This document shows positions 5,875-44,528 of a stretch of 44,528 nt of DNA, one piece after another. Positions within the stretch are counted from its first letter, which is position 1. Every line of letters begins with the position of its first letter. Made by a program: the position numbers and the translations under genes. The stretch covers positions 1 to 44,528 of the forward strand of contig QPMI01000118.1 in the NCBI GenBank assembly GCA_004431415.1, read 5' to 3'. The notes under the pieces were generated by a model, which saw only the letters and a list, made by a program, of their open reading frames with translations, made no database searches and was not told the DNA's origin. The DNA comes from Cyanophora paradoxa CCMP329 (taxonomy: Eukaryota; Plantae; Glaucophyta).

Positions 5875-5906
<32 letters not shown>

Positions 5907-12420: not shown

Positions 12421-12460
<40 letters not shown>

Positions 12461-13206: not shown

Positions 13207-13264
13207 CTGCAGCCTGCAGGCGCTAGAGCTCTGCAGCGCTAGCGCTAGCGCCTGCAGCCTGCAG
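13207..13264. repeat. 20-bp inverted repeat (19/20 match, 18-nt loop) built from CTGCAG/GCTAGC palindromes, about 100 nt after the gene 3 stop
   Basis: ctgcagcctgcaggcgctag (13207-13226) versus ctagcgcctgcagcctgcag (13245-13264). Confidence 0.75.
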
Positions 13265-13856: not shown

Positions 13857-16800
13857 ATGGAAGGCGCCAGTAGAGGGGGAAGGCGCCGCAGGAGCCCAGC
13901 GCGGGTCCGAACTCGGAGGATTCACGCGGCATGCGCGTTGGTGCTCCTCGTAGTCTTCGTGGTCGCGTCGGCCCAGACTACCAGCGAGGGCAATCGCGCG
14001 ACCAACATCATTTTCGTGGACCTGGACGCGGCCTCCGACTTCGCTAAGCTCGTCCAGTCCGCGCCTTACTGCCCCACGCTGAAAGGTAAAACCGCACATT
14101 CGGAGGGGTGCGGTGCGAGAATAACTAATCTCATTCGCAGTCGACTCCTGGGCTGGCATAAATGGATCCATTGTCGGCTCGGTGTCGGTCTCCGGCTCGA
14201 CCGCGGGGCTCCCATCGTTCGCGCTTGGTCCGCGGCTGCCATTAGAAGCATGCAATATGCAATCTCTGTTCGCGAATCGTAACCGGCGACTTTCGCTCCT
14301 TGCAGCGACCGTGGAGTACCAGGTCGATTTCGGCGTGCAGGAGTCGTACAACACCTACTACGGCAGTTGGTGGAACAGGTCAGCGCGCGCATTTCGTGCA
14401 GCATCGTCTCTGGTTTGATCGACCGACGGCTCTGACGCCCTACGGTCCAGGCCGTCGGACGCGCAGCCGTCCGTGTCTGTTGCTGACGGCTCGTGGTCTG
14501 TGTCTGTGAGCGAGGGTGCGCTGCCTTTCATCGCTCCCTGTACATTTCTTTGGCATCTAAGCGAATCGCTCGGCCGCGCAGCCGACCTCGTCAACCTGTA
14601 CCTGGTGCCGTCGAGCGCATCGGTACCGCTGACGCAGGGCAACCGGTGCGCCCCGCAGGGCGACGCCGGGCTCCACATGCTAAGCGCTCTGTGATACCGC
14701 AGGTACCTGCCGGACGCGCTGGAGTCGCTCGCTGTCTCGCGGTCGGTGCTCGCACTGGGCCCCACGACGCGGCAGCTGCAATGGTCATGGCCCCGCGCTC
14801 CTGCTTGTGCGCCTGGGGCTGATGCTTGCTCTCTGCGCAGGTCCGGCAAGGTCTGGGCGAAGAAGGTGGCCAAGTTCACGCAGCTGGACCCTGGTGCGTC
14901 GGCTGCTCGGCCGCTGACGCCCCGCACACGAGCTCACGGACTCGGGTCCGGGCAGGTGGCAACTTCTGGTCCAACCGCGACGAGGATGTCTGGGTCGACG
15001 ACCAGGGCAAGCTGCACCTGACGCTCAAGCGGGCGACGCAGACCACCGACGACGGCTTCCTCCAGGGCCGCTGGTACAGCACAGGTGCGCAGCTTGCGCG
15101 GGCGGGCAGCCTTGAAAGCCTGGACTCACGCGTGGCTCGCAGAGGTCGTGCTCCAGGACATCATGGGATACGGTGCGCTTCAGAGCTTCCAGCGTCATGG
15201 GGCTCGCTGATCCGCAGCAGGCACGTACATCTGGTACCTCGACGCCCCCGTGCCTTGGGTTGACCCGTACGCTGTGCTTGGTATCTTCTTCTGGGTGCGG
15301 TGCTGTGCTCGCCGCTGTTGCGCGCCGTCGTCTTGTTCGATCGCTGACGTTTGGCCCCGCCTCGTTCGCGACACCTGCAGGAGGAGGAAGCGGTGCGTCT
15401 ACTGCTGTTGTCTCGCATCAACGTCAGTCTTGCAAATCCTCACTCCACTCGCGCGCTCAGACCGGCATCTCCCCCTGGCGGCACCGTGAAATCGCGTTCG
15501 AGTTCAGCCAGTTCGGAGTGGGCGCCGACCCGACCAACTTCCAGTTCGGCTCAGCCTACGACCCGGTCCGCGCTGGCGGCCATCTACAGCTCGCGTCACT
15601 CGCGTCTCGCTCACGTACCCTGGCGCCGCAGAATCCGGCGATCGGCCGGCCGGAGAACGCGACGATTCGCGTCAACATCAATGACTTGAAGGAGGCGAAG
15701 AACGTTCCGGCGAGCCAGACCAAGTACACCCTGCACTGTACGCGCTGCCCTCTCTTATCGCTAAACTTAAAGAGAATCAACTCACGCTTCTCAGTGACCT
15801 GGACGTCCGGCCGTGCTGTCTTCCGCGTCTATCCGGACTGGTCCGCGGTTGTCCATGACTGCGTCAGACGTACAAATTGTGAACTTGCATTCGGCAGGAT
15901 TTGCAAGTCGAAGCTCATGACGAAGGTGGAGCGCGATGCGCAGACGCTTCTTGCGGAGGAGGTCATCGAGTACCCGGTCTGTCATTATTGTTCACAAGCC
16001 TCGATGGTGGAGTGACCTCCTCCCGCCGCAGAACATCCCTACGCCTGGCCGCCAGCGCGTCCGGATGAACATGTGGAAATTCCGTGCGCCCTGTAAACGA
16101 AGCGGTGCTGGGCATGCTGATCGTGCCTCGCAGCCGACACAACGGGCGGAGACCGTCAGCCCCAGGACCGGACTTACGAGGGTAAGCGCTTTTCCTCTCC
16201 AGTGGATCGAACTGCCTCTCATACCCGTCCCGCAGCGGTTTTCGGCGGATTCGACTACGTGCCGGGTTCGCTGTTCTTCCCGTGTTCTGCAAGCCGTCAA
16301 CCCCCATTCTGACGGTTCTTCTGCAGGCGGGCCGGTTCCCACCAGCGCGCAGATGCCGGACTGTACGACTCTCAAGGTCGTGTTCGACCAGGTGCGCTGT
16401 CCACTTTTCTGTAGCTGCGCTCAAGCTCACAGCTTTCGCGCAGCGTATCGCACTTCCCCGCTCGAAGTCGCTGGTCTCCTTCTCGCCATCTTTCATTGGC
16501 TCCAACGCGGACCCTGCGGATCTCGCGAGCACAGACTGCTCGATGCTCGATGCCGCCTCGCTCGCCCTCGTCGGTGGCGCCGGTTCGTCTTTATGTATGC
16601 GCGCGCGTCGGCCTCGCTTGTCGCTTAGCGATGGCGCCAGATGCGAAGTGCACGATCACGGGCCCGAGCGAGATCACGATCCAGCTCGGCGCCTCCGCGA
16701 CCGTGATGCCCGGCGCGAGCATCAACCTGCGGCCCAACACCGTCGCGACTTCGACGGTGACCTGCGGCGACGCGGAGCCCCTCGTCACCTGGAGGGCCGT

Positions 16801-19800
16801 CGTGCCGTCGGAGCTGTCCAGCTGCTCGTCCACGACATCGACAGGTCTCTCTGCGTCGTGGAACCCCGGCGCCACCATCGGCGTCACCCAGCCGACCGGC
16901 TCCGACAAGCTTGACACCGTGCTGGACGCTCGTTTCAAGGCCCCCACGGCCATGCACCCTTGCAACAACCTCATGCTTGACGCCTCCACGACTGGAGGCA
17001 CTTGCGGTCGCCGCGTCGTTTACAAGTGGGGCTTCGGTGCGCGTTTTGTGTGGTGCTTTCTTCACCGATTCTGATCCTGAACTATCCCGCAGAAACGCTT
17101 GCGCCGAACAACATCTCCGTCGATGCGATTCGCGGCATCGTGGAGTCGGCGAACAGCACCGTCGTCCAGATCCCCAAGGAGCTGTTCGACCCCGGCCAGA
17201 CCTATACTTTCAACCTGACCGTCACGAACGCGTTTGGTCTGTCGTCGACCACCAAGCAGTCCACTGCCGTGTTTCCGATCGACGTTCCCATCGCCATCAT
17301 CTACGGCGCTCGCGACTTCTTCCCTCGAAGCGAGAACCTATATCTTGATACCGATCTTATTCCCGCGTACTGCCTTGGGATCACTCTTGGGCAGCTCCCG
17401 CCACTCGGATTTGATGTGAGTCGTTTTTAACATGATTTTTCTTCGTTGCTTGTCTGATCCTTGTGCGCAGTGGGCTGTTCGCGCTCTGAGCCCCCCAGGG
17501 CCTGAGCTCGCCATTCCCGACGCGTCCTTCAACTCGTCGCGGCGCCAGCTTATCATCCCTGTCCAGGCGCTCACTCCCGGCACGCTGTACGGATTCACCT
17601 TCCGCGCATATCAGATCGAGAAGCCTACCGTGTACGGCGAGGCCTTCGCGATGGCTTTCGCCAAGTACTCGCCGCTCGTTGTCGATATTCCGGAGACGGA
17701 CCGCACAGTGACTCAGCAGGTTCCTGTGAAGCTCACGTGCCAGGCGACTGATCCCGATGCGGGCTCCACGGGCACCTGGCAACCCGCGCCCACCGATAAG
17801 CGCCGTCGCCTAGCCAACCTCATCGACGACTTCACGACGCGCGCCAACCGCCGCCGCGCCCTCCTGGGCGACGAGCACGTGGTTGTCAAGCCGACGGTTG
17901 ATGAGATCTCGTGTATCTCCGGCGGCACGGACGGCACTTGCGTCATCTACTTCGGTGAGCGCTTTCCGACTCTTGTTCAGATGTCATGCGAATATTTCCG
18001 CAGGTTACGATAACCCGTCCACGAGGACGGTCGTGCAGCATGTGGTGACTGAGCCCGGCACCGCACCGACGTACAACACGCTGTACCTCCCGTTCGGCGT
18101 GTCGAACGTGTCGATTCCCCACGAGTTCATTCCCGGCCGCCAGTACAAGGTGTTCTACATCACTGTCCCGTGTGTCCCTTGCACGCAGACATACGCGTGG
18201 GCGCTCAAGACGAGCTCTGCGGACTCCGCCATCACCGCTTCCGCCAACCCGTGCTTCCCGCCGACGGACAGCGCCCCAACGTTTGATACGACCAGCAAGA
18301 AATGCACGGCCATTAAGCCGGACACGGCAGTTGTGCAGACGTCTGACGCGAGCTACGAGTGGTACTGCGAGGACCTGTCTGCGGCCGGAACTCCGTGTTC
18401 CGAGTTCATCGAAGCGTTTTCTGGCGGCATTCCCACAGGCGACACGCTCAACTTCATGTTCCGGCCGGGATTCAACTTTCCCTTCAAGTTTACCTGCAAC
18501 GGTTACGTTGGAAACAAGGCCGGCAAGGACTACGTGACGCTCACTTCAGTCGCTGGTAACGGTCCGACGGTCCTGGTCTATGGCGTCTTCGATGAGTACG
18601 GCAAGCCGTTCCCGAAGATCCAGGACGGCGATCGCTACATCCCGATCGTCCCGTGGAACCGCCCCCTCATGTTCCAGACCAAGGTGACGTCGAACGTCCC
18701 CGTCGGCACTGATCCGACGGTGACGTACGAATGGTCGCTGCCGCCCTCGGACATCGCTCTCGAGTACGGCAAGACGATTTCGACGACGAGCCGCTACAAC
18801 GTGCCGACTCTCATTGTCATGAAGAACGTCGTAACTCCGGGCGCCATTTACCGCGCGACGGTTACCGCTCAGGACGCCCTCAACAATGTCGCGTCTGGTT
18901 ACGTCGAGTTCAAAGTCGGCACGCCGCCGCTCACGCGGTCGCCCATTGGCGGCTTGATTGTCACTCCGACGAATGGCACGGCCATGGGATCCGGCCCCGA
19001 GACTACGCTGTTCCGCCTGACCGCGCTGGACTGGTACTCGCCGTTCGGGCCCGTGGACTTCAAGTTCTATTACATTCCTCCCCGTCAGCAGCAGAACGAT
19101 ACCATTTGGCTGTTTGAGGATATCGTGAACGGCACCGTCCGCAATGACACTGATGGGCGCGAGGAGCTCATCAGCGGGTGGAACCCTTCGAACACTCGCG
19201 GCAACGTCCTGCTCCCCGCTGGAATCCTGCCCTACTACTACATCACGTATGCGATGCTCGATTGATGGTTGTCGCTCTTGCACTCACTGCGGTGCAGGTG
19301 TGTGGTCTACGTGCGCGACATTTACGGAACGGAAGTCCGCGCGTTCACCCGCGCGAGCGTGCTCCCTCCGCGATTGACGGTACGCAACTGCAAATAACCT
19401 TGATGTCGACCAGAGGGTTGAGTTCACTACAGATTTGGTCGATCACGAACCGCACCGTCGGCTGGGCGGCGGACATGATCAACATCGGTGATCCTGGCGC
19501 AGGCCTGAACTCCATTCTCGCCGGTGCGCATCTGATCAACTGGGGCGCGAACGGAACCGCGGCCACGTGCTCGGTGTCGCTTCCATCGCTGTTGAGTTCC
19601 TGGAGTGACGACGATCCGGCCAACCCCACGGACGAGGCCGAGTACATGTACATGAAGGGGCACTACATCGTACGTAACGACCCTCGTTTAATTCTCTTCT
19701 GCCCGCGAGAATCTTATGACACCTTTCCATCGTCAGGTTCAGAACGAGGGGCGCACGGCCATCAGGGGCTCGCTCACGGTCACCTGCCAGCAGGTGTCCA

Positions 19801-22800
19801 CGTTCGCCAGCATTGCTGAAACAGGCAACCCACTCGAGACAAGAATCCCCTACTCGTCTCCGTATTCGAACGATGGTGGTCTTAACCAGCGTCTCTCTGC
19901 GGGGAACACCATCTACGATGACTCGTTCAACCTCACCGATGTCGGCTGGGCCATGCCCGTCGGGGGCTCCTCCAGCTTCGACCTGATCATCCGTTGCCCG
20001 AAGGGCCAGCAAGCACGGTGCCTGCTGCCGGTGTGCAGCTGCCCGACCGGGGACCAGAATCTGGCCAGGCCGGAGTCGCTCGACAAGCTGATGACGCTGG
20101 TGCGATAATCTTCCTCTGCTCTGCAGTGATCACCCCTTACTTCATTTTACGCAGGCCGCAAATATCACCTACCAGCTCAGCCGCGGCTCTATCCCGGACG
20201 CCGAAGTCGAGCAATGCATTAACGCTATCAATGGCATCTTCGGCGAAACAAACACAGACGCCATCATGTCTGGAACGACTCGAACCGCCGCCGGCATTCT
20301 CGCAGAGCTCCTCCGCGTCATGTTCGTTCACACCGGCTTTTCGATCGCTTTTCTGGAGCTAACCGCCTGCCGGCAGTGAGGCGGGCCAGCTTCCGTACGA
20401 TGTCACGTACGCGGCTGTGGAATCGCTGAACCGAATGCTGTGGAACCAGAATCAGCCGAACGACGTAGCGTGCGTTTGCGGCCGTGTTTGCTCACAATAT
20501 CGATCTATCTCACGCACCCTTGCTCACAGGACCGGCCGCCCCGACGCGCCGGGGGTCAAGCTGTCGAATATCACTATTTCGTCGATCTTCGTCACCGTCA
20601 ACTACCCGTCGTCCGTGATCCCCAGCGACGTGATCATGACGATCATCTACCGCCAAGGCCCAGAAGACGCAGAGCCGGTTCTGTTGGAGAGTCTGCCGAA
20701 CGGGCAGAACACGTACAACGACGAGGGGCTGCACTACGGCACCGTCTACACTTACACGGCGACCTTCACCCTGTCGAACGCGATCACCAGCCAGGTCTCC
20801 GATCCGGTCTCTGGCCTCACGCTCCTCCCCGTCGTGCCTACGCCGGTGATCACTGAAATCATCGAAGTCACCGAGAACTGTGAGCCTCTTGTTTGCTTGA
20901 ATTTGCTCGCATGTTCTGAATTCGTTTCTTCGCAGACGTCCAGCTGGCGTTCACGGCGGAGTGGTCAACGAACGGCATCGATGTCGATTTTATCCAGGCG
21001 AATCACACGCAGTACCCTATCTCCGTCCTGATCGCGCCAACGAAGAGGCGGGCGAACCGCCGTATGCTGGCCGCCGGCGAGCTTGCATTCAACGTACCGA
21101 GGGTCAGGGTCACTGAGTTCGGCGCTCTCAACTTCAGCGACTTCGACCTCGCTCCAGGGTCTGTCTACGACTACAACATCATGGCCCACGCCGAGAGCGG
21201 GGCCTTCTCCGCGGGATCGCCGGAGTACCGCATCACCACGTGCCCGTCGCCTCCGTCCCTGGACGTCATCTACGTGACCTGGAACTATGTCAACGTCTCG
21301 GTCGTCGAGCCGCTGGATAGGTCCGCTCAGGTGGCCGTTCGGGCGTACCTGAGGCGCCGCTACGAGCGCTCGGGAGCCGACGTGACGCTGCTGGTGAAGG
21401 AGGACGTCGTCCCGAAGCTCGATGTGACGCTGCCTTACTTGGACAAAGAAGTGCTCCCGGGGCGCGTGATCATCTACTCGGCGCGGTACGCCGTCCTCAA
21501 CTACGAGAAGCTGTACTACTCGCGGTGGACGGAGAACATCCCCGTCTACACCCCGCCGAGCCCTCCGGAGATCAATGCGACGCCCGTGAATTCGACCTGC
21601 GTCAGCGTCACCGTCTCGTGCCCTGCCGACGCCACGGAGCAGTACATCCGCAACGTGACCATCTACCGCGACGGCACACCGATCGCCACCCTGCCCGCCT
21701 GCGACGGGAACACGGATCCAGTTACCATCGTCGACTGCGGGGTCATTCCGGGCGGCGACCACACGTACACCTCGACTTTCAACGGCGATCACGGCACGAC
21801 CTCTGAATCATCCCAGGCGGCTCCCACGGAGCTCCCGCCATCGCCCCCGACTCTCGGCAAGGAGAACGTGGAGGACAAGAGCGCCGACATTAATATTTTC
21901 CTTCCGACCGACGGCAGCGCCACCGGGAACAACTCCGTGGTCGGGGCGTACCTGCTCCGCAACGGCGAGCCCGTCAATGATGTTCAGGGTGGCCCGTTGA
22001 ACGAGGGCGGCTGGGTCGAAGGGCCCGGCGACTGGACGTACCCGGACTCGGCCCTCAGCCCCGGCACCGAGTACACGTACGAAGCGTACATCGTCCGCGA
22101 AAACGGCCTCAAGTCGGCGACGTCGGAGCCGCTGACGTTCTGGACGCCCTGCTCACCGCCGCAAGTGGTGGCGACGTCGCCGACTACGGATTGCATCACC
22201 GTGATTATCACGCTTCAGGATCCCGTTTCCTCTGCGCTCGTGATCAACGTCACGAGGTCCACCGAGGGCGAGGCTCCCGTGGATGTCCGGTCGATCATCG
22301 TGCAGCCTAATGTCACCGTATACTCCTTTGAGGACTGTGGCCTGAATGCGGGCCGCCCGTACAACTACACTGCGACCGTGGACGGCAAGGGCGACACCAC
22401 CTCCGACCCTTCTAAGCCGGCTGAGGAATCGACCGTGCCCCCGCCACCCATCCTTACTCTTGGCCCGGACCCGATCACCAAGGACAACGCAACTTTCACG
22501 ATTTCCGTGCCCGATGGCACCAATGCCGACGACATCAAGTCTTTCAATGTGTACTGCAACGATAAGAAAATCGCCAGCGTCACGCTTCCTGCAGATCAGT
22601 CGAGTGTCACGTTCACGCACGATATCCACATCCCCGGCCATTTCTGCAAGTGCGTTGCATCGTTGACTGTCTGGCAGTCATCCGGTCTCAACTCACTCAC
22701 CTCGCAGTTACTCGGCGGAGATCGTATCGAAGTGGGATGAGGTCTCGAAGGAGTCCGAAGATCTCCCGTTGACGACGTCGCCTCTGGCGCCGCTTCCAGC

Positions 22801-25800
22801 TTGGGTCCCGTCGGGCGAGGATGCGAGCGAGGATCCGAAGTGCCGGTTCAAGAACACCATCAAAGCGACCGAGGTTACGATCACCGTTGCGTACCCCAAG
22901 GACGACCCATCGGGTGCCGAGAGCGGAAGCACCGTGACTCTGCTCGTGCTCGTAGTAAATGGCCCCTCGGGTCAGGAGCAGGTTCTTACGCCGCACACGG
23001 ACGCCCAAAATTACAACATCACGATTGTAAACCTGCAGCCGGACACTGTGTACACGATCATCACATACTACCACGGCATCGGAACTGCCCGGTCGTTCAA
23101 TTCGAGCGTCATTGTTCGGACTGCACCGTCTCCGCCGTCTGTTGAGATCACGGACACCTCAAAGACGCACGTTTTCTTGTCGTTGGAGTACCCGCAGACA
23201 GGGGGGAGCTTCTTGAACATTGATTTGAAGAGGCGACTGCTCGCTGACACCGAGGAATGGAATCCAGTAGTTGGGTCACCTTTCCAACCTGGAACGCACA
23301 ACGACAGCGCCGGCATCCTCCCTGGCCGGTACTACTCTTACATCGGCCGAATTGTTACTGATGTGTCCGGCGTGTGCTCTGACTGGTCCACCGCGGCCTC
23401 GAACTGGACGGAGATCTATCCTCCGATCATCCACGTGGACCCTGCCAACAAGACCCTGTCCGGCCTCGGCCCCGCGGTCACGAACGAGAGCGTGCGCATC
23501 AATATTGAGTATCAGACCCTCGAGAACTGGCAGGTAGTGTCCGTGGTGTACTTGTACCGGAATCGCACGGAGGCGTCCATTGGCGATCTCGTCGTCTTTG
23601 GCCAGCCTGACCGTAGTGCGGAGCTCTCTCCGCCGACTCTCATCGACCTGACGGCGAAGCCTGGAAACCGGTACAACTACGTCGCGCGGTTTGATGGCCC
23701 AGGCGAGGTCACTTCGGACTGGTCCAACGAGATCTGGGTCACCACTCCTCCCTCGGCTCCGATCTTGAGCCTGATCTACGCCGATGACGACATTATCACC
23801 ATCGACGTGCTGCCACCCACGGACGGCAGCGCGTTCAACCCCGATGTCCCCGTCTCCATCTTTATTATTCGCGTTGTCGTTAACGAGACTGGTCGGTTCC
23901 CCTCCGACCCCATTCGAGTGGACGAGTTCGGCCCGTGGAACGACTACGGTATCAGTCCTGACTACCGTGAGCCTGCAACTCAGTTTGAATACGTGGCGTA
24001 CTTGGAGACGGCCGATCAGTTCAAGTCGCCGGAATCGAACCGCGTCGACGTCGTCACCGCGCCCACGAGGCCTATCGTTGACGCGGACTACAGCGGCGTC
24101 GTTCTTATCGACGTCCTTCCTGGGCTCATCGAGTACAGTCCGGTCAACGCGTCGGATGTGCCTTTGCAGATCGTTATGCCCGACGACGGCAGCTACGAGG
24201 TGGCGACCGCCATCGTGATCTACCGCGATGGGCTCATCGTGGAGCCTGCTCTGTCGATGGACGTGATTGACTGTAAGGACACTTCTGGGAAGAAGTGCGT
24301 GTACTGGCGGGACGCTGGCCGCTCATCGGCCACATCCTACAAGTACGCGGCCTCCTTCAAGACGGCGCAACCTCTGGTCAACTCGCTGCAGTCGGATAAC
24401 TACACGATAATCTCTGCGCCGGTCAAGCCTGTGCTGGGGGCGTACTCGACGACCACCGACCACAACGTTACGATCAGCGTCCCGTATCCGGCGGGGTCGG
24501 CAGAGAATGTCCGCAGCGCGTCCGTCATCCAAGACACCCAGTGCTTCCGCCTTAGGGTCGGGCAGGACTCGTGGGGAACCCTCGATCCTCTACTCCTCTC
24601 TGGCGGCGAGGACAAGTACACCCTGGTCGATCGCAGCGTAAAGGAAGCCGCGGCTGTCTACAAGTACAAGTGCGTTTTCCGCGGCACCCCTGGCCAGCCG
24701 ATCTACGACACGAAGAGTGTCGAGTCGGAGGCGCTGGATGTGCATCTCCGCCCGGATCCCCCGGTTCTCAGTGGAACGACTGAGAACTCCACGGCTATTA
24801 CATTGACTGCGACGACTACTGGACTGAGTGCTGATATCACCAACGGGACCCGCTTCGAGTGCAACGGCACACTCATTGTTGTGACGGTCCCTGCTTCGGA
24901 ATCCGGTGTGACCTCAACGCTCCTTGGCCAGCTCAAGCCCGGGACAGTGTACACCTGCGTCGCGATTCTGGAATCTCCGTACGGAGACTCGGCGCCGTCT
25001 GTGCCTGAGGTCATCTCTACGGACCCCGCGCTGCCCCCGACTGTTGTCTGGGCTTACAGCAGCGAGCTCGGTGGCCAGACGAACTCTACCGCCGTCTGGC
25101 TCCGGGTGGACAATGTTCCGAACCCGAACGTGCCCGACATCCAAGTTGGCCAGGTCGTCATCCTGACGGATGCCGGTGTTCTTGTCACGACCCTGACGTC
25201 GAGTCCGTGGACGTTTGTGCACGCGGGCCTGACCCAGCGCAAAGAGTACAAGTACAAGGCCTTCTACACTACCCAGGGGGCGGACTCCCTTGCTAGCTCC
25301 GTGACGAGTGCATGGACAGCTCCGGCCGCCCCGGTCGTATCGATGACGGACCGCACCCACACGAGCATCTCGCTTTCAATCACTGAGGACAACACTGGCG
25401 GCGGCGAGAGAATCACGCATACCAAGGTCGAGCGCAGGCTGTTTGATTCGGATACCTGGGCTGCGAACTCCGACTGCTCCACCGACAACCAGCTTCCAGG
25501 CAACACATGCACAGACGATAACGACCTCAGCGCCGGCACCCAGTACGTGTACAGGGCGCGCTTCCTTGGCTGGGGAGGTGCCGAGGACGTCACGGAGGGC
25601 GAATGGTCGACGCCCTTGAACGTGTATTCCGAGGTCGAGCCGCCTGTCCTCACCTGCGTCTCTGCAACAAAGGACAGCGTAACGGGCTCGATCACATACA
25701 AGAATGGCACTGAGGCAGCTACTGAAGTTCGCGTCACTCGGACTTACCCGGACTCGGATCCTACGGCGGTCTTGACGGACAGCTCTGACCCGTGGGAAAC

Positions 25801-31800: not shown

Positions 31801-34800
31801 CTGTGGGGTGGGAGAAGAGCAACGGGACGGAGCTCTACCGCGACGGCGCCGGCTCCAGCCCGATCGTGACGATCCCGCTCTCGCCGTCGAGCTGCGGGCC
31901 GTGCATTCGCAATGCGTCTCTCAGCGGATGCTGTCTCCGATTCAACGACACCGGCCTGGCCGAGGGCCGCGCGTACAACTACACGGCGCTGCTGACGGTC
32001 GACAATGGCGGGGTGCGCGTCACGTCGCCGGAGTCGGCGAAGAAGGAGCTCTGGACCGCCCTGCCTGCGCCTGTGCCGGTCATCCACGCGAGCACGAACT
32101 ACCCGTCGGTGACGGTGAACGTTTCCCTGCCGCTGGGGCTCGAGAGCGTCGTCGTGAGGACGGTCTGCTGGGCCAACGCGTCGGCGGTCACCTTCACCGT
32201 CTCGGGCGCGCAGTTCGTCGTTTCGAGTGAAGACGGCGCGACGGGCTACAAGGTGGACTGGGCGACGGCGTACGTGTGGAAGTGCGTGTTCGAGGGCCAA
32301 GGGGGCACGAGAAGCGAGGTGGGCGACGTGGCGGTGACGCTGCCGCCGAAGGCCCCCGTCGTGACGATGACGATGGTGGACTCGAACACCATCAAGGTTC
32401 ACATCGAAATCGAGCACGACGCGAGCAACGTGCTTGCCGACAACTACCAGCTGACCTGCAATGACACGAACACGGCGCGCACGGTGGCCATCGAGCGGAT
32501 GGGCCTGGCGGAGGAGGTCCTCGTGTCCCTGCAGCCGAGCACGACGTACTCGTGCTGGGCGATTGCGACCTCGTGGGTGGGCCCTCGCAGGACTCGGACA
32601 CGGCGTCGGCGACGACGGACGACTCGCCGCAGCCGACCCTCACGACGACTGCCGTCAACGCGACGGCGGTGTGGTTGGAGGTCGCGCTGCCGACGCTCGA
32701 CCCCGTGGTGAATGTGGCGGGGGTGCGGATCTCCCGGGCGATGTCCAGCGCGGCGGGGAGTGAGTGGACGACGGTCGCGACGGTCCCGACGGCGGACAGC
32801 GACGGAGTGTACCGCCACGTGGACGCGGGCCGCGCGCACCAGACGGATTACTGGTACAAGGCGGTGTACCTGACGCCTGCGGACTCGAAGGAGAGCGAAT
32901 CGAAGCAGGCCCGCACCGGCCCGCCGGCGCCCCAGCTGTCCCTGGGCTACAAGACGGAATTCGACCTGAGGGTGGACCTCGCGGAGACCGACCTCAACAA
33001 GCTCCGCGTCTCCGAGACGTTCCTGTTGCGCAACTCGTCGCGAGTGTGCAGCGAGGCGTCGGACAACTGGCTCGCGTCGTGCGTTGACGGCACCGGGGCC
33101 ATCAACCCCGGCATCACGTACGAGTACACGGCGCAGTACGAGGGCTTGGTCTTCTACAACGGCTTGGAGCGCAATGAGAGGGGCCTGATCTCGGATCCGC
33201 TCCACGTGACGGCGCTGCTGGTGGTGAAGCCGACCATCTCGTACACGCTGGTCACCGCGACGACCGTGAAGATCTGCGTGACGTACCCGCGAAACCTCAG
33301 CCACGCTGAGATAAAGACGACGGAGTTCTCCCGCCTGTACCTTCCGACAAGCACCCCCAACACGTTCTCCATCCCCAAGGAGGACGAGTTCGAGGACTGC
33401 ATAACGCTCACGGGCCTGGAGCCGGCGACGACGTCGAACATCACGGCGTACTACACTACGACGGGCTGAACTCGCCGACCTCGGACGTCCTCCAGGTGAC
33501 GCAGGCGAGCCCGGCAGCGCCGAAGCTGTATGTGAGCTTCGAGCCGGCCTACCCGAACGCGACGGCGGTGAAGGTCCAGGTGGTGTACCCGACCGAGCCG
33601 GCGGATCCGGAGATGCAGACTGACCCGGCCGAGGACCTCCTGCCGGTCATCAAGCGGATCGACCTGTACCGCAACGGCTCGCTCGTTGGCTCGCAGGGCG
33701 CAGTCAGCACGTCGGACACGTACGAGTTCATCGACGACGAGCTCGCCCCTGGCCTGCTCTACTACTACCAGGCGACGCTGTTCACGCTGTACACGAACTC
33801 GCCGAACGGGTCGGCACTGGCGGAGACGGACATCGCCGCCAAGCCCAAGATCACGGCGACGGGCATCGACCGCAACACGTCGGCGATCACGCTGGTGGTG
33901 GACCGCCCGGTGCCGGAGCAGGCGGCGGCAGTGACGATCCGCATCTACCGCGCGCCGTCGGTCGACGGGACGTACCAGGAGATTGCGGAGATCAACAGCA
34001 AGCCGGAGCCGGAGGGCCACTACGTGTACACCGACACGGCTCGCGTGGCGGGGACGCAGTACTGGTACAAGGCGGACTACACGACGTCCGGCGAGCCGGA
34101 CGGGATCGCCGGGAAGGACTCGGATCTGAGCGATGCGGACGGGGCGTGGACCGCGCCGTCGCCGCCGGCGTTCAGCCTGAACTCGGCCACGGTGACGGGC
34201 TCCAGCGCGGTCACTGTCAGCCTGCACATGGCGCCGTCGGTGGCGAACAGCTCCGTCACCGGCTTGGTGGTGTCGCGCGACAGCTTCAGCTTCAGCTGCT
34301 CGGCGCCGAGCCCGATCGGATGGTTGGGCGGGGTGGGCGGCACGGCCACGTGCGTGGACGAGGACGCTGATCCCGCGACGACGTACACGTACACGGCGCA
34401 CTACATTGGCCAGGAGGGGCTGACGAGCGAGCGCGCGCACTTCAACGTGACGACGCCACCAGAAGCACCGCTGGTCGTCAAGGGCCCGTACCGGGCGACG
34501 ACCTCGACCATCAGCGTGGAGATTGAGCTCCCTGTGGGGTGGGAGAAGAGCAACGGGACGGAGCTCTACCGCGACGGCGCCGGCTCCAGCCCGATCGTGA
34601 CGATCCCGCTCTCGCCGTCGAGCTGCGGGCCGTGCATTCGCAATGCGTCTCTCAGCGGATGCTGTCTCCGATTCAACGACACCGGCCTGGCCGAGGGCCG
34701 CGCGTACAACTACACGGCGCTGCTGACGGTCGACAATGGCGGGGTGCGCGTCACGTCGCCGGAGTCGGCGAAGAAGGAGCTCTGGACCGCCCTGCCTGCG

Positions 34801-37800
34801 CCTGTGCCGGTCATCCACGCGAACACGAACTACCGTCGGTGACGGTGAACGTTTCCCTGCCGCTGGGGCTCGAGAGCGTCGTCGTGAGGACGGTCTGCTG
34901 GGCCAACGCGTCGGCGGTCACCTTCACCGTCTCGGGCGCGCAGTTCGTCGTTTCGAGTGAAGACGGCGCGACGGGCTACAAGGTGGACTGGGCGACGGCG
35001 TACGTGTGGAAGTGCGTGTTCGAGGGCCAAGGGGGCACGAGAAGCGAGGTGGGCGACGTGGCGGTGACGCTGCCGCCGAAGGCCCCCGTCGTGACGATGA
35101 CGATGGTGGACTCGAACACCATCAAGGTTCACATCGAAATCGAGCACGACGCGAGCAACGTGCTCGCTGACAACTACCAGCTGACCTGCAATGACACGAA
35201 CACGGCGCGCACGGTGGCCATCGAGCGGATGGGCCTGGCGGAGGAGGTCCTCGTGTCCCTGCAGCCGAGCACGACGTACTCGTGCTGGGCAATTGCGACC
35301 TCGTGGGTGGGCCCCTCGCAGGACTCGAACACGGCGTCTGTGACGACGGACGACTCTTCCAAGCCGACCCTTACGACGACTGCCGTCAACGCGACGGCGG
35401 TGTGGTTGGAGGTCGCGCTGCCGACGCTCGACCCCGTGGTGAATGTGACGGGGGTGCGGATCTCCCGGGCGATGTCCAGCGCGGCGGGGAGTGAGTGGAC
35501 GACGGTCGCGACGGTCCCGACGGCGGACAGCGACGGAGTGTACCGCCACGTGGACGCGGGCCGCGCGCACCAGACGGATTACTGGTACAAGGCGGTGTAC
35601 CTGACGCCTGCGGACTCGAAGGAGAGCGAATCGAAGCAGGCCCGCACCGGCCCGCCGGCGCCCCAGCTGTCCCTGGGCTACAAGACGGAATTCGACCTGA
35701 GGGTTGACCTCGCGGAGACCGACCTCAACAAGCTCCGCGTCTCCGAGACGTTCCTGTTGCGCAACTCGTCGCGAGTGTGCAGCGAGGCGTCGGACAACTG
35801 GCTCGCGTCGTGCGTTGACGGCACCGGGGCCATCAACCCCGGCATCACGTACGAGTACACGGCGCAGTACGAGGGCTTGGTCTTCTACAACGGCTTGGAG
35901 CGCAATGAGAGGGGCCTGATCTCGGATCCGCTCCACGTGACGGCGCTGCTGGTGGTGAAGCCGACCATCTCGTACACGCTGGTCACTGCAACGACCGCGA
36001 AGATCTGCGTGACGTACCCGCGAAACCTCAGCCACGCTGAGATCAAGACGACGGAGTTCTCCCGCCTGTACCTTCCGACAAGCACCCCCAACACGTTCTC
36101 CATCCCCAAGGAGGACGAGTTCGAGGACTGCATAACGCTCACGGGCCTGGAGCCGGCGACGACGTCGAACATCACGGCGTACTACACTACGACGGGGCTG
36201 AACTCGCCGACCTCGGACGTCCTCCAGGTGACGCAGGCGAGCCCGGCAGCGCCGAAGCTGTATGTGAGCTTCGAGCCGGCCTACCCGAACGCGACGGCGG
36301 TGAAGGTCCAGGTGGTGTACCCGACCGAGCCGGCAGATCTGGAGATGCAGACTGACCCGGCCGAGGACCTCCTGCCGGTCATCAAGCGGATCGACCTGTA
36401 CCGCAACGGCTCGCTCGTTGGCTCGCAGGGCGCAGTCAGCACGTTGGACACGTACGAGTTCATCGACGCCGAGCTCGCCCCTGGCCTGCTCTACTACTAC
36501 CAGGCGACGCTGTTCACGCTGTACACGAACTCGCCGAACGGGTCGGCACTGGCGGAGACGGACATCGCCGCCAAGCCCAAGATCACGGCGACGGGCATCG
36601 ACCGCAACACGTCGGCGATCACGCTGGTGGTGGACCGCCCGGTGCCGGAGCAGGCGGCGGCTGTGACGATCCGCATTTACCGCGCGCCGTCGGTCGACGG
36701 GACGTACCAGGAGATTGCGGAGATCAACAGCAAGCCGGAGCCGGCGGGCCACTACGTGTACACCGACACGGCTCGCGTGGCGGGGACGCAGTACTGGTAC
36801 AAGGCGGACTACACGACGTCCGGCGAGCCGGACGGGATCGCCGGGAAGGACTCGGATCTGAGCGATGCGGACGGGGCGTGGACCGCGCCGTCGCCGCCGG
36901 CGTTCAGCCTGAACTCGGCCACGGTGACGGGCTCCGGCGCAGTCACTGTCAGCCTGCACATGGCGCCGTCGGTGGCGAACAGCTCCGTCACCGGCTTGGT
37001 GGTGTCGCGCGACAGCTTCAGCTTCAGCTGCTCGGCGCCGAACCCGATCGGATGGTTGGGCGGGGTGGGCGGCACGGCCACGTGCGTGGACGAGGACGCT
37101 GATCCCGCGACTTTGTACACGTACACGGCGCACTACATTGGCCAGGAGGGGCTGACGAGCGAGCGCTCGCACTTCAACGTGACGACGCCACCAGAAGCAC
37201 CGCTGGTCGTCAAGGGCCCGTACCGGGCGACGACCTCGACCATCAGCGTGGAGATTGAGCTCCCTGTGGGGTGGGAGAAGAGCAACGGGACGGAGCTCTA
37301 CCGCGACGGCGCCGGCTCCAGCCCGATCGTGACGATCCCGCTCTCGCCGTCGAGCTGCGGGCCGTGCATTCGCAATGCGTCTCTCAGCGGATGCTGTCTC
37401 CGATTCAACGACACCGGCCTGGCCGAGGGCCATGTGTACAACTACACGGCGCTGCTGACGGTCGACAATGGCGGGGTGCGCGTCACGTCGCCGGAGTCGG
37501 CGAAGAAGGAGCTCTGGACCGCCCTGCCTGCGCCTGTGCCGGTCATCCACGCGAACACGAACTACCCGTCGGTGACGGTGAACGTTTCCCTGCCGCTGGG
37601 GCTCGAGAGCGTCGTCGTGAGGACGGTCTGCTGGGCCAACGCGTCGGCGGTCACCTTCACCGTCTCGGGCGCGCAGTTCGTCGTTTCGAGTGAAGACGGC
37701 GCGACGGGCTACAAGGTGGACTGGGCGACGGCGTACGTGTGGAAGTGCGTGTTCGAGGGCCAAGGGGGCACGAGAAGCGAGGTGGGCGACGTGGCGGTGA

Positions 37801-40800
37801 CGCTGCCGCCGAAGGCCCCCGTCGTGACGATGACGATGGTGGACTCGAACACCATCAAGGTTCACATCGAAATCGAGCACGACGCGAGCAACGTGCTTGC
37901 CGACAACTACCAGCTGACCTGCAATGACACGAACACGGCGCGCACGGTGGCCATCGAGCGGATGGGCCTGGCGGAGGAGGTCCTCGTGTCCCTGCAGCCG
38001 AGCACGACGTACTCGTGCTGGGCAATTGCGACCTCGTGGGTGGGCCCCTCGCAGGACTCGGACACGGCGTCGGCGACGACGGACGACTCTCCGCAGCCGA
38101 CCCTTACGACGACTGCCGTCAACGCGACGGCGGTGTGGTTGGAGGTCGCGCTGCCGACGCTCGACCCCGTGGTGAATGTGACGGGGGTGCGGATCTCCCG
38201 GGCGATGTCCAGCGCGGCGGGGAGTGAGTGGACGACGGTCGCGACGGTCCCGACGGCGGACAGCGATGGGGTGTACCGCCACGTGGACGCGGGCCGCGCG
38301 CACCAGACGGATTACTGGTACAAGGCGGTGTACCTGACGCCTGCGGACTCGAAGGAGAGCGAATCGAAGCAGGCCCGCACCGGCCCGCCGGCGCCCCAGC
38401 TGTCCCTGGGCTACAAGACGGAATTCGACCTGAGGGTGGACCTCGCGGAGACCGACCTCAACAAGCTCCGCGTCTCCGAGACGTTCCTGTTGCGCAACTC
38501 GTCGCGAGTGTGCAGCGAGGCGTCGGACAACTGGCTCGCGTCGTGCGTTGACGGCACCGGGGCCATCAACCCCGGCATCACGTACGAGTACACGGCGCAG
38601 TACGAGGGCTTGGTCTTCTACAACGGCTTGGAGCGCAATGAGAGGGGCCTGATCTCGGATCCGCTCCACGTGACGGCGCTGCTGGTGGTGAAGCCGACCA
38701 TCTCGTACACGCTGGTCACCGCGACGACCGCGAAGATCTGCGTGACGTACCCGCGAAACCTCAGCCACGCTGAGATCAAGACGACGGAGTTCTCCCGCCT
38801 GTACCTTCCGACAAGCACCCCCAACACGTTCTCCATCCCCAAGGAGGACGAGTTCGAGGACTGCATAACGCTCACGGGCCTGGAGCCGGCGACGACGTCG
38901 AACATCACGGCGTACTACACTACGACGGGGCTGAACTCGCCGACCTCGGACGTCCTCCAGGTGACGCAGGCGAGCCCGGCAGCGCCGAAGCTGTATGTGA
39001 GCTTCGAGCCGGCCTACCCGAACGCGACGGCGGTGAAGGTCCAGGTGGTGTACCCGACCGAGCCGGCGGATCCGGAGATGCAGACTGACCCGGCCGAGGA
39101 CCTCCTGCCGGTCATCAAGCGGATCGACCTGTACCGCAACGGCTCGCTCGTTGGCTCGCAGGGCGCAGTCAGCACGTTGGACACGTACGAGTTCATCGAC
39201 GCCGAGCTCGCCCCTGGCCTGCTCTACTACTACCAGGCGACGCTGTTCACGCTGTACACGAACTCGCCGAACGGGTCGGCACTGGCGGAGACGGACATCG
39301 CCGCCAAGCCCAAGATCACGGCGACGGGCATCGACCGCAACACGTCGGCGATCACGCTGGTGGTGGACCGCCCGGTGCCGGAGCAGGCGGCGGCAGTGAC
39401 GATCCGCATCTACCGCGCGCCGTCGGTCGACGGGACGTACCAGGAGATTGCGGAGATCAACAGCAAGCCGGAGCCGGTGGGCCACTACGTGTACACCGAC
39501 ACGGCTCGCGTGGCGGGGACGCAGTACTGGTACAAGGCGGACTACACGACGTCCGGCGAGCCGGACGGGATCGCCGGGAAGGACTCGGATCTGAGCGATG
39601 CGGACGGGGCGTGGACCGCGCCGTCGCCGCCGGCGTTCAGCCTGAACTCGGCCACGGTGACGGGCTCCGGCGCAGTCACTGTCAGCCTGCACATGGCGCC
39701 GTCGGTGGCGAACAGCTCCGTCACCGGCTTGGTGGTGTCGCGCGACAGCTTCAGCTTCAGCTGCTCGGCGCCGAACCCGATCGGATGGTTGGGCGGGGTG
39801 GGCGGCACGGCCACGTGCGTGGACACAGGGGCGAGGCCCGCGACTTTGTACACGTACACGGCGCACTACATTGGCCAGGAGGGGCTGACGAGCGAGCGAT
39901 CGCACTTCAACGTGACGACGCCACCAGAAGCACCGCTGGTCGTCAAGGGCCCGTACCGGGCGACGACCTCGACCCTCAGCGTGGAGATTGAGCTCCCTGT
40001 GGGGTGGGAGAAGAGCAACGGGACGGAGCTCTACCGCGACGGCGCCGGCTCCAGCCCGATCGTGACGATCCCGCTCTCGCCGTCGAGCTGCGGGCCGTGC
40101 ATTCGCAATGCCTCTCTCAGCGGATGCTGTCTCCGATTCAACGACACCGGCCTGGCCGAGGGCCGCGCGTACAACTACACGGCGCTGCTGACGGTCGACA
40201 ATGGCGGGGTGCGCGTCACGTCGCCGGAGTCGGCGAAGAAGGAGCTCTGGACCGCCCTGCCTGCTCCTGTGCCGGTCACCCACGCGAACACGAACTACCC
40301 GTCGGTGACGGTGAACGTTTCCCTGCCGCTGGGGCTCGAGAGCGTCGTCGTGAGGACGGTCTGCTGGGCCAACGCGTCGGCGGTCACCTTCACCGTCTCG
40401 GGCGCGCAGTTCGTCGTTTCGAGTGAAGACGGCGCGACGGGCTACAAGGTGGACTGGGCGACGGCGTACGTGTGGAAGTGCGTGTTCGAGGGCCAAGGGG
40501 GCACGAGAAGCGAGGTGGGCGACGTGGCGGTGACGCTGCCGCCGAAGGCCCCCGTCGTGACGATGACGATGGTGGACTCGAACACCATCAAGGTTCACAT
40601 CGAAATTGAGCACGACGCGAGCAACGCGCTCGCCGACAACTACCAGCTGACCTGCAATGACACGAACACGGCGCGCACGGTGGCCATCGAGCGGATGGGC
40701 CTGGCGGAGGAGGTCCTCGTGTCCCTGCAGCCGACCACGACGTACTCGTGCTGGGCGATTGCGACCTCGTGGGTGGGCCCCTCGCAGGACTCGAACTCGG

Positions 40801-43800
40801 CGTCGGCGACAACGGACGACTCGCCGCAGCCGACCCTCACGACGACTGCCGTCAACGCGACGGCGGTGTGGTTGGATGTCGAGCTGCCGACGCTCGACCC
40901 CGTGGTGAATGTGGCGGGGGTGCGGATCTCCCGGGCGATGTCCAGCGCGGCGGGGAGTGAGTGGACGACGGTCGCGACGGTCCCGACGGCGGACAGCGAC
41001 GGAGTGTACCGCCACGTGGACACGGGCCGCGCGCACCAGACGGATTACTGGTACAAGGCGGTGTACCTGACGCCTGCGGACTCGAAGGAGAGCGAATCGA
41101 AGCAGGCCCGCACCGGCCCGCCGGCGCCCCAGCTGTCCCTGGGCTACAAGACGGAATTCGACCTGAGGGTGGACCTCGCGGAGACCGACCTCAACAAGCT
41201 CCGCGTCTCCGAGACGTTCCTGTTGCGCAACTCGTCGCGAGTGTGCAGCGAGGCGTCGGACAACTGGCTCGCGTCGTGCGTTGACGGCACCGGGGCCATC
41301 AACCCCGGCATCACGTACGAGTACACGGCGCAGTACGAGGGCTTGGTCTTCTACAACGGCTTGGAGCGCAATGAGAGGGGCCTGATCTCGGATCCGCTCC
41401 ACGTGACGGCGCTGCTGGTGGTGAAGCCGACCATCTCGTACACGCTGGTCACTGCACGACCGCGAAGATCTGCGTGACGTACCCGCGAAACCTCAGCCAC
41501 GCTGAGATCAAGACGACGGAGTTCTCCCGCCTGTACCTTCCGACAAGCACCCCCAACACGTTCTCCATCCCCAAGGAGGACGAGTTCGAGGACTGCATAA
41601 CGCTCACGGGCCTGGAGCCGGCGACGACGTCGAACATCACGGCGTACTACACTACGACGGGGCTGAACTCGCCGACCTCGGACGTCCTCCAGGTGACGCA
41701 GGCGAGCCCGGCAGCGCCGAAGCTGTATGTGAGCTTCGAGCCGGCCTACCCGAACGCGACGGCGGTGAAGGTCCAGGTGGTGTACCCGACCGAGCCGGCG
41801 GACCCGGAGATGCAGACTAGCCCGGCCGAGGACCTCCTGCCGGTCATCAAGCGGATCGACCTGTACCGCAACGGCTCGCTCGTTGGCTCGCAGGGCGCAG
41901 TCAGCACGTTGGACACGTACGAGTTCATCGACGCCGAGCTCGCCCCTGGCCTGCTCTACTACTACCAGGCGACGCTGTTCACGCTGTACACGAACTCGCC
42001 GAACGGCTCGGCACTGGCGGAGACGGACATCGCCGCCAAGCCCAAGATCACGGCGACGGGCATCGACCGCAACACGTCGGCGATCACGCTGGTGGTGGAC
42101 CGCCCGGTGCCGGAGCAGGCGGCGGCAGTGACGATCCGCATCTACCGCGCGCCGTCGGTCGACGGGACGTACCAGGAGATTGCGGAGATCAACAGCAAGC
42201 CGGAGCCGGAGGGCCACTACGTGTACACCGACACGGCTCGCGTGGCGGGGACGCAGTACTGGTACAAGGCGGACTACACGACGTCCGGCGAGCCGGACGG
42301 GATCGCCGGGAAGGACTCGGATCTGAGCGATGCGGACGGGGCGTGGACCGCGCCGTCGCCGCCGGCGTTCAGCCTGAACTCGCCACGGTGACGGGCTCCA
42401 GCGCAGTCACTGTCAGCCTGCACATGGCGCCGTCGGTGGCGAACAGCTCCGTCACCGGCTTGGTGGTGTCGCGCGACAGCTTCAGCTTCAGCTGCTCGGC
42501 GCCGAGCCCGATCGGATGGTTGGGCGGGGTGGGCGGCACGGCCACGTGCGTGGACGAGGACGCTGATCCCGCAACGACGTACACGTACACGGCGCACTAC
42601 ATTGGCCAGGAGGGGCTGACGAGCGAGCGCGCGCACTTCAACGTGACGACGCCACCAGAAGCACCGCTGGTCGTCAAGGGCCCGTACCGGGCGACGACCT
42701 CGACCCTCAGCGTGGAGATTGAGCTCCCTGTGGGGTGGGAGAATGAGCAACGGACGGAGCTCTACCGCGACGGCGCCGGCTCCAGCCCGATCGTGACGAT
42801 CCCGCTCTCGCGTCGAGCTGCGGGCCGTGCATTCGCAATGCATCTCTCAGCGGATGCTGTCTCCGATTCAACGACACCGGCCTGCCGAGTGCCGCGCGTA
42901 CAACTACACGCGCGCCTGCTGACGGTGCGACAATTGGCGGGGTGCGCGTCACGTCGCGGAGTCGGCGCAGAAGGAGCTCTGGACCCCCTGCCTGCTCCTG
43001 TGCCGGTCACCCACGCGAACACGAACTACCCGTCGGTGACGGTGAACGTTTCCCTGCCGCGGGGCTCGAGAGCGTCGTCGTGAGGACGGTCTGCTGGGCC
43101 AACGCGTCGGCGGTCACCTTCACCGTCTCGGCGCGCGCAGTTCGTCGTTTCGAGTGAAAACGGCGCGACGGGCTACAAGGTGGACTGCGGGCGCACCGGC
43201 GTACGTGTGGAAGTGCGTGTTCGAGGGCCAAGGGGGCACGAGAAGCGAGGTGGGCGACGTGGCGGCGTGACGCTGCCGCCGAAGGCCCCCGTCGTGACGA
43301 TGACGATGGTGGACTCGAACCATCAAGGTTCACATCGAAATTGAGCACGACGGCGAGCAACGCGCTCGCCGACAACTACAGCTGACCTGCAATTGACACG
43401 AACACGGCGCGCACGGTGGGCATCGAGCGGATGGGACCTGCGGAGGAGGTCCTCGTGTCCCTGCAGCCGACCACGACGTACTCGTGCTGGGCGATTGCGA
43501 CCTCGTGGGTGGGCCCCTCGCAGGACTCGAACTCGGCGTCGGCGACAACGGACGACTCGCCGCAGCCGACCCTCACGACGACTGCCGTCAACGCGACGGC
43601 GGTGTGGTGGATGTCGAGCTGCCGACGCTCGACCCCGTGGTGAATGTGGCGGGGTGCGGATCTCCCGGGCGATGTCCAGCGCGGCGGGGAGTGAGTGGAC
43701 GACGGTCGCGACCGTCCCGACGGCGCGACAGCGACGGAGTGTACCGCCACGTGGACACGGGCCGCGCGCACAGACGGATTACTGGTACAAGGCGGTGTTA

Positions 43801-44528
43801 CCTGACGCCTGCGGACTCGAAGGAGAGCGAATCGAAGCAGGCCCGCACCGGCCCGCCGGCGCCCCAGCTGTCCCTGGGCTACAAGACGGAATTCGACCTG
43901 AGGGTGGACCTCGCGGAGACCGACCTCAACAAGCTCCGCGTCTCCGAGACGTTCCTGTTGCGCAACTCGTCGCGAGTGTGCAGCGAGGCGTCGGACAACT
44001 GGCTCGCGTCGTGCGTTGACGGCACCGGGGCCATCAACCCCGGCATCACGTACGAGTACACGGCGCGTACGAGGGCTTGGTCTTCTACAACGGCTTGGAG
44101 CGCAATGAGAGGGGCCTGATCTCGGATCCGCTCCACGTGACGGCGCTGCTGGTGGTGAAGCCGACCATCTCGTACACGCTGGTCACCGCGACGACCGCGA
44201 AGATCTGCGTGACGTACCCGCGAAACCTCAGCCACGCTGAGATAAGACGACGGAGTTCTTCCCGCCTGTACCTTCCGACAAGCCCCCAACACGTTCTCCA
44301 TCCCCAAGGAGGACGAGTTCGAGGACTGCATAACGCTCACGGGCCTGGAGCCGGCGACGACGTCGAACATCACGGCGTACTACACTACGACGGGGCTGAA
44401 CTCGCCGACCTCGGACGTCCTCCAGGTGACGCAGGCGAGCCCGGCAGCGCCGAAGCTGTATGTGAGCTTCGAGCCGGCCTACCCGAACGCGACGGCGGAT
44501 GAAGGTCCAGGTGGTGTACCCGAACGAG
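13857..44528 (+). CDS. Giant secreted/cell-surface protein: signal peptide, GH16-like domain, REJ (polycystin-1-like) module and about 78 FN3-like domains; 3'-truncated, >9,000 aa
   Basis: ATG 13857 followed by hydrophobic IHAACALVLLVVFVVASA|Q. A continuous frame results after removing 31 GT-AG introns (first 14086-14140, last 22650-22707). One exon then runs 22708..>44528, broken only by 1-nt indels. Abundant N-x-S/T sequons and Cys pairs. Confidence 0.85.
14141..16265 (+). other. Bacterial-type GH16-like (beta-jelly-roll glycoside hydrolase/lectin) domain with N-terminal accessory module
   Basis: Spliced: RQLQWSGKVWAKK...PGGNFWSNRDEDVWVDDQGKLHLTLK...WYSTEVVLQDIMGYGTYIWYL...DPYAVLGIFFW...HREIAFEFSQFG...LTWTSGRAVF...IPTPGRQRVRMNMWKF...EAVFGGFDYVP. 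This follows the motif order I recall for a bacterial GH16-like subfamily. Confidence 0.72.
16641..19379 (+). other. REJ / PKD1-like extracellular module
   Basis: PCNNLMLDASTTGGTCGRRVVYKW, PGQTYTFNLTVTNAFG, LTPGTLYGFTF and PP...GGLIVTPTNGTAM...TLFRLTALDWYSPFGPVDFKFYY match REJ-domain hallmarks. Confidence 0.72.
20530..26302 (+). other. About 18 mutually diverged FN3-like domains
   Basis: Roughly 100-aa periodicity: T-x-P-x-x-P ... IYR(D/N)G ... D-x-G-L-x-PG-x-x-Y-x-Y ... S-x-x-S. Confidence 0.8.
26303..44528 (+). repeat. Coding tandem array: 2,733-bp (911-aa, 9 FN3-like domain) unit, 6 full copies plus a partial 7th, near-identical
   Basis: Anchor gtggagattgagctccct recurs at 26321, 29053, 31785, 34516, 37248, 39981 and 42712. 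Spacing is 2731-2733, and each shortfall equals the number of 1-nt deletions in that unit. Confidence 0.97.

Follow-up and report, generated by a model that had tools for sequence, protein, structure and literature searches.

A predicted giant extracellular protein of Cyanophora paradoxa with a GH16-fold head, a REJ module and a rod of at least 78 FN3-like domains

We analysed a stretch of 44,528 nucleotides from the glaucophyte Cyanophora paradoxa CCMP329 (GenBank assembly GCA_004431415.1, contig QPMI01000118.1, positions 1 to 44,528 of the forward strand; hereafter the window). From position 13857 to the window end its plus strand carries a very large gene, whose predicted product begins with a signal peptide and continues through a GH16-fold domain, a REJ module and a long chain of FN3-like domains. 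An earlier note on this DNA had described these parts as one spliced frame, still open at the window end. The features are as follows (aa, amino acids).

13857–13973, plus strand: start codon and probable cleaved signal peptide (aa 1–39), with a basic n-region, a hydrophobic core at aa 22–38 and A-S-A before Q40
14079–14778, plus strand: N-module of about 120 aa (aa 75–198) on six small exons, which also precedes GH16 in some bacterial proteins
14779–16328, plus strand: GH16-fold domain (aa 199–455) with many introns, from a bacterial profile, a paralogue structure, Atlas and RNA joints
15488–15502, plus strand: altered active-site motif EIAFE (aa 309–313), both Glu retained, middle Asp replaced by Ala
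16329–16933, plus strand: beta-rich segment between GH16 and REJ (aa 456–620), conserved in the paralogue P0002, no Pfam match
16934–19379, plus strand: REJ module (about aa 621–1365), with an inserted loop that carries two basic sites
19433–20530, plus strand: linker after REJ (aa 1366–1652, about 290 aa), apparently partly helical
20537–26260, plus strand: 18 mutually divergent FN3-like domains (aa 1655–3524) with two introns, from a hidden Markov model (HMM), AlphaFold2 and Foldseek
26261–44528, plus strand: tandem array without introns, in which a unit of 2,733 bp (911 aa, nine FN3-like domains) recurs about 6.7 times, giving about 60 domains and continuing at the window end
27643–44499, plus strand: one-base insertions or deletions (indels) in the array frame, at 27643, 31752, 32582, 33463, 34833, 41456 and 42382 (deletions), with about 36 more after 42700

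The gene model was built from the sequence, on the basis of GT-AG sites, RNA joints and alignment with paralogues. It comprises 32 exons from the ATG at 13857 to 27620 on the plus strand, 3,977 codons without a stop, and its 31 introns are all GT-AG and 48–86 nt long. It holds the signal peptide, the N-module, the GH16-fold domain, REJ, the linker, the 18 unique FN3 domains and then the first array unit. To this extent the single frame of the earlier note stands, at 3,977 aa; further on, the array frame is broken by the one-base indels. Contigs of the probable RNA runs X17, X18 and X19 were mapped to 14780–20760 (5,981 letters). Among the joints listed, at least 19 of the 24 introns in this interval were supported, through joints, inserted micro-exon letters or loose ends. 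The introns at 16182, 16266, 16392, 20322 and 20470 were not among the RNA joints listed, and these include both domain junctions that had been doubted, near 16300 and 20500. X17 RNA had depth in all 30 bins of the interval, and no splice joint was among those listed for the DNA run X1. A 12-nt micro-exon within the GH16 domain (15381–15392, EEEA) is supported by an X17 RNA contig, and P0002 has a four-residue gap nearby. The gene is transcribed and spliced.

The public model tig00000470_g1171 (P0012, 5,766 aa) is identical to ours at residues 1–2179, with the start codon common to both, which identifies the window as tig00000470, and the public model g1173 (P0013) covers part of the array. 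Separate genes split at 16300 or 20500 were considered and rejected on the RNA contigs, the public models and paralogue collinearity, in keeping with the one gene proposed earlier. The RNA-trained public models g1171 and tig00000431_g675 span both junctions. Furthermore, P0002 (48% identical) is collinear over the N-module, GH16 and the whole of REJ, across the 16300 junction, and the paralogue P0006 is collinear from the linker to the first FN3, across the 20500 junction.

Next, we turned to the head. Remote searches were made with single exons, stop-free stretches or public protein ids, and array breaks were written as N or X in the joined model. Pfam and PDB sequence searches with the GH16 exons gave nothing useful, and the fold was reached only via a paralogue and a bacterial profile. 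We found that aa 199–455 aligned with a bacterial family profile at an hhalign probability of 100%, with about 30% identity to the bacterial group, which is uncharacterised and comes from Verrucomicrobiota, Planctomycetota, Latescibacterota and Acidobacteriota. The profile of this group matches Bacillus lichenases (E 6e-11), and the motifs align, with E309 and E313 falling on the lichenase Glu positions. An AlphaFold2 model of the P0002 head (pLDDT 70) matched GH16 structures with a Foldseek probability of 1.0 and a VIA Z of 12.5 over 195 residues. The jelly-roll fold of GH16 was found in this P0002 model, and the window domain is tied to it through the profile alignment; together these back the GH16-like domain of the earlier note. 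The N-module had no Pfam match, and blastp against a small local set matched it to L003 (E 1.8e-9), L001 (6e-6) and L006 (3e-4).

The canonical EXDXE/EXDXXE motif is absent from the window head. The motif reads EIAFE in the window, EIAFE in a second copy of the gene on tig00000431 and ELAIE in P0002, with Ala in three of three Cyanophora heads; each of the 14 prokaryote-type relatives retains the middle Asp. Lichenase activity drops strongly when this Asp is lost, background for which our literature search found no source. Judged from the motif, the Asp-to-Ala change would favour binding rather than cutting at the head. An unrooted tree places the three Cyanophora heads together on a single long branch (100/100) and does not resolve a bacterial donor. 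No relative was found among viral contigs, and the single metagenome match was a prokaryote-type GH16 gene that has no introns and retains the Asp. One bacterial relative of the head (P0007 locus) adjoins a GT2 cellulose-synthase-like gene and a PIG-L gene, and another (L011:28-3612) is fused to a GH30 domain, which hints at a role of the bacterial GH16 group with exopolysaccharide.

The REJ module of the earlier note was confirmed by Pfam. PF02010, the domain of the PKD1/REJ family, was matched above its cut-off by the exon at 18006–19244 (E 1e-6, 28.1 bits, cut-off 25); the exon at 17095–17415 gave E 4.5e-4 and the near-identical P0008 gave E 1.9e-14. The linker that follows is 41% identical to P0006 up to and over the first FN3. 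It had no Pfam or PDB sequence match, and we found no sequence evidence in it for GAIN homology.

The rod accounts for most of the protein. An iterated HMM found 78 FN3-like domains of about 100 aa, the number estimated earlier, with 0–2 in shuffled sequences and none in the head. AlphaFold2 modelled the domain at 21835–22155 with a pLDDT of 86, and its top Foldseek matches were the FN3 domains of titin, Ihog and Robo3 (TM score 0.6–0.7). The fold was modelled for this one domain, and the remaining domains are linked to it by the HMM. Pfam fn3 on window exons gave 17–21 bits (E 4e-4 to 8e-4), below the cut-off of 25, which was exceeded only in paralogue P0010.

The earlier note did not mention that, of the 78 domains, about 60 are 98.4–99.6% identical DNA copies of one nine-domain unit. 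The array units, at 98.35–99.6% DNA identity, are mosaic, with 98 of 210 informative site pairs incompatible; consensus calling could contribute to this mosaic, and the unit number is uncertain. No older nine-domain period was seen within the unique FN3 region. At the amino-acid level, units are 97.4–99.3% identical within the window and 97.8–98.8% within tig00000431_g689, and 95.9–97.9% between the two contigs. The nine-domain unit is also found on tig00000269, collinear and with 44–54% identity. The units are thus more alike within than between contigs, and these results point to an old super-repeat homogenised by unequal crossing-over or conversion. It is unlikely that the array consists of assembly copies of one unit, since the units differ at 74 sites and the second contig has its own variants. 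The ratio of non-synonymous to synonymous substitution (dN/dS) among array units is roughly 0.42, and the longest unbroken open reading frame of the array lies at 34527–41474. Stop-free frames also run antisense along the array (26240–41492, minus strand; for example 34833–41492, 2,220 codons), probably as a shadow of the GC content at third codon positions, which is 0.92 in the units.

We counted 18 N-glycosylation sequons per 911-aa unit against 7.2 expected (p = 6e-5), close to the 17 counted earlier. In the unique FN3 region we counted 30 where 16.6 are expected (p 5e-4), and the head is not enriched. Since sequons are enriched in both the FN3 region and the array, an extracellular rod is supported. 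The hydrophobic stretch in aa 1–39 is the sole segment scoring as a membrane helix in 9,615 aa. The start in the tig00000431 copy is identical to that of the window gene, and the cleavage motif is present in both copies. Taken together, the signal peptide, the sequons, the folds and the paralogues support the extracellular giant with a GH16-like head, REJ and FN3 rod that the earlier note had proposed.

The closest relatives of the REJ exon were all EukProt proteins of Cyanophora paradoxa. The second copy, tig00000431_g675 (P0008), is also transcribed and shares 94.9% identity with the window protein across residues 1–2758; the head is the best conserved part between the two copies (98.8%). 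All ten of the checkable amino-acid-changing variants in RNA and DNA contigs match the tig00000431 copy, so much of the RNA evidence derives from it. X18 and X19 contigs with the window's own alleles exist, including one spliced X19 contig at 19070–19317. Among the 40 variants listed, codon changes between the two copies were 27 synonymous and 11 non-synonymous (rough dN/dS 0.13), and the gene is under purifying selection. Diploid alleles are a less probable account of the two copies, because the genome has been reported to be haploid; the sequencing runs may be from other strains. Older paralogues lie on tig00021282 (79%), tig00021501 (48%), tig00021504 (40%) and tig00021464 (41%), and tig00000269 carries a related giant gene (P0010, P0011) with LamG (PF13385) blocks among and after the FN3 units. 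Next to g675 stands P0014 (tig00000431_g674), 107 aa and 100% identical to part of the g675 GH16 domain, which may reflect partial duplication in tandem or an artefact of the assembly; g689 and g690, the array models of tig00000431, lie 14 gene numbers past g675. No relative with this architecture was found in other eukaryotes, either among 1.84 billion representatives or by length-limited word-based searches, neither of which is proof of absence.

The 13.8 kb of unique sequence contain no indel, and the array contains no nonsense substitution. Each array indel is private to one unit, whereas 21 informative substitutions are shared between units. The first five indels are all deletions in runs of three or four identical bases, and such runs account for 10% of the unit. 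About 36 indels are concentrated in the last 1.8 kb of the window, where their density rises steeply, and this error gradient suggests that the contig ends within the array. The assembly was made from PacBio RSII reads with inserts of about 15 kb, Quiver and majority-rule Illumina polishing, from a genome that is probably haploid (PMC6704402); inserts of this length are shorter than the array. The public model g1171 has gaps precisely at the first three breaks and ends at the fourth. The indel pattern indicates that the breaks are probably long-read or assembly errors. Writing X at each break gives a chain of 9,615 aa without a stop, and if the indels are taken as assembly errors, the product would be 9,600 aa or longer.

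We lean, with a little more confidence than doubt, towards a membrane-anchored glycoprotein stalk of the polycystin-1/REJ type, 0.27–0.31 micrometre long or longer, with a glycan-binding tip and a spacer that has been moved. An FN3 domain is 3.5–4 nm long, and the glycosylated FN3 chain would form an extended stalk of 270–310 nm or more. One C-terminal membrane helix beyond the sequence end would anchor the protein. The number of nine-domain units would set the stalk length, and unequal crossing-over would change it. The head, which keeps the glucan cleft and lacks the assisting Asp, would for this reason mainly bind beta-glucan-like polymers, on other cells, on the substrate or in the alga's own secretions, and would tether the bound polymers or report contact to the membrane. 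The glycan-sensing tip about 0.3 micrometre from the cell suggested in the earlier note is a fair inference from these parts, although the C-terminal anchor it needs lies outside the window; its prey or microbe sensor found no direct support. Several points weigh against the anchored stalk. The window contains no GPS, membrane helix or C-terminus, and both the membrane anchor and the function are inferred. RNA contigs cover 14780–20760, upstream of the array, and cannot demonstrate a single transcript. Both catalytic Glu are kept in the head, and basic RRxL-type sites, if used, could let the head be cut from the stalk.

The nearest known design is that of the SpREJ1/PKD1 family (PMC1934368, PMC3677617), with which the protein shares a secreted-pathway giant, a sugar-binding-type head, REJ and beta-sandwich repeats. 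SpREJ1 combines a lectin head, REJ, GPS and one transmembrane segment, single-pass members exist in the family, and 9 of 10 SpREJ proteins have a transmembrane segment (PMC1934368). In polycystin-1, according to the PKD1-family literature, GPS cleavage requires REJ. The window protein differs in its head, a bacterial-type GH16 module in place of a C-type lectin, SUEL or WSC domain, and in its repeats, which are FN3 in a nine-domain super-repeat and stand after REJ rather than before it. Because the repeats sit after REJ, at least 7,900 residues part REJ from any GPS or membrane. GPS or GAIN does not directly follow REJ: the 290-aa linker and at least 78 FN3 domains come next, with no GPS or GAIN match. 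PLAT was not seen in the window chain, and aa 40–640 gave no Pfam match to PKD repeats or to C-type lectin, SUEL or WSC ahead of REJ. With titin A-band super-repeats the protein has the FN3 fold, super-repeat organisation and very large size in common, by analogy only; titin is intracellular, whereas the window rod is rich in sequons and built of units almost identical at the DNA level. Neither REJ proteins in Cyanophora nor a GH16, REJ and FN3 layout turned up in the literature searched, consistent with the earlier view that the architecture had not been described.

An alternative that we consider improbable is a secreted filament, unanchored or shed, such as mucocyst content or matrix. Golgi proteases would cut RRxL-like sites, and the freed head and rod pieces would polymerise or cross-link polysaccharide. 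RRxL-type basic motifs are subtilase or convertase sites. Basic RRRL/RRRA sites at aa 872–895 (about 17790–17860) are conserved in three paralogues (P0002, P0003 and P0008), and RRML (aa 1807–1813, about aa 1810) and RRLL (aa 2515) follow further on; these may be proprotein-processing sites. No anchor is seen in the window, and Cyanophora has mucocysts, as the literature records. The prevalence of the transmembrane segment among SpREJ proteins argues for an anchor instead.

Less probable still is a decaying duplicate, in which the breaks in the array would be real and a secreted product of about 4,000 aa would end near 27721, or none would be made. The indels do stand in the reference despite Illumina correction, and there is a second copy, about 95% identical, whose alleles most RNA contigs carry. 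However, the pattern of the indels resembles error, 3,977 codons of unique sequence have neither stop nor indel, the spliced X19 contig carries window alleles and synonymous changes are in excess; real breaks are, in our estimate, as unlikely as the decay itself.

The head also raises the question of an active endo-glucanase or transglycosylase on a stalk, which might cut or remodel extracellular glucan. Both catalytic Glu and the strong conservation of the head between copies would fit such an enzyme, as would the lichenases, the closest solved folds. Like the lichenases (GH16_21) and the bacterial group, the window head has a beta-jelly-roll and the non-bulged five-residue motif spacing, and some members of the bacterial group also have the N-module. 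The window head differs from them in its EXAXE motif in place of EXDXE, its fusion to REJ and FN3, its many introns and its long branch. The Ala that replaces the EXDXE Asp in every Cyanophora head occurs in 0 of the 14 relatives, and non-catalytic GH16 binders are known in a family whose motif is EXDXE (PMC6827312). The GH16_4 binders among them share the fold, an altered catalytic motif and possibly a use in recognition; the window head belongs to a different GH16 lineage by our searches, keeps both Glu and sits on a giant stalk. We regard an active enzyme as very doubtful. A reverse orientation, with an uncleaved N-terminal signal anchor, head and REJ at the membrane and the FN3 rod reaching outward to a C-terminal tip, fits the strongly basic 21-residue N-terminus ahead of the hydrophobic stretch and the tig00000269 array with its LamG lectin-like domains among and after FN3 units, but can hardly hold given the short core, which in both copies is followed by a small-x-small motif typical of cleavage.

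The surroundings of the gene differ from it in composition. Its introns at 14086–22707 are GT-AG only, with 57.5% GC and CCCCG at 2.2 per kb; the sequence of window 1–13100, with three upstream genes, has 70–81% GC and CCCCG at 8.4 per kb, so that two intron styles are adjacent. Upstream of the gene, 13207–13346 holds palindromic and inverted repeats with 24-nt arms (92% complementary), and similar CTGCAG-rich palindromes occur in the spacer near 2750–3160. Positions 1–2556 on the plus strand carry an intron-rich WD40 gene with an acidic tail, one piece of which had no Pfam match; by eye, it looks DCAF1/VprBP-like.

The anchored stalk leads to a further possibility, unlikely though worth stating, that the family builds the long, narrow flagellar hairs of glaucophytes or a comparable surface filament. 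Cyanophora flagella bear short flat hairs and long narrow hairs, as the literature describes; these hairs are known from electron microscopy, and our literature search found no protein assigned to them. The analogy is with Chlamydomonas MST3, a giant repeat protein that anchors a hair, is a proposed length-setter and has been likened to PKD1 (PMC11015965). In both cases one giant algal repeat protein would determine how long a filament is and act in the manner of PKD1. MST3 has a PKD2-like channel domain as well as 42 polyproline repeats, and the likeness is one of description, with no homology claimed; the hydroxyproline-rich repeats of Chlamydomonas-type mastigoneme proteins are absent from the window, where the repeats are FN3-like.

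If the family does build such hairs, they would contain a single-chain FN3 ruler, tuned in length by unit copy number, coupled to membrane signalling and bearing REJ and a disarmed bacterial glucanase at its tip, and an independent polycystin-1/mastigoneme-like design would have arisen in a third archaeplastid lineage. The genes described here provide named candidates for glaucophyte flagellar hairs. They belong to a family of very large genes that has been hidden in public annotation because the genes are split at assembly errors, and in which a bacterial-type two-domain enzyme cassette has been reused, probably as a binding tip. Collectively, these data would extend the polycystin-1/REJ-type surface proteins to glaucophytes, in a form in which a very long spacer parts REJ from the GPS and the membrane.

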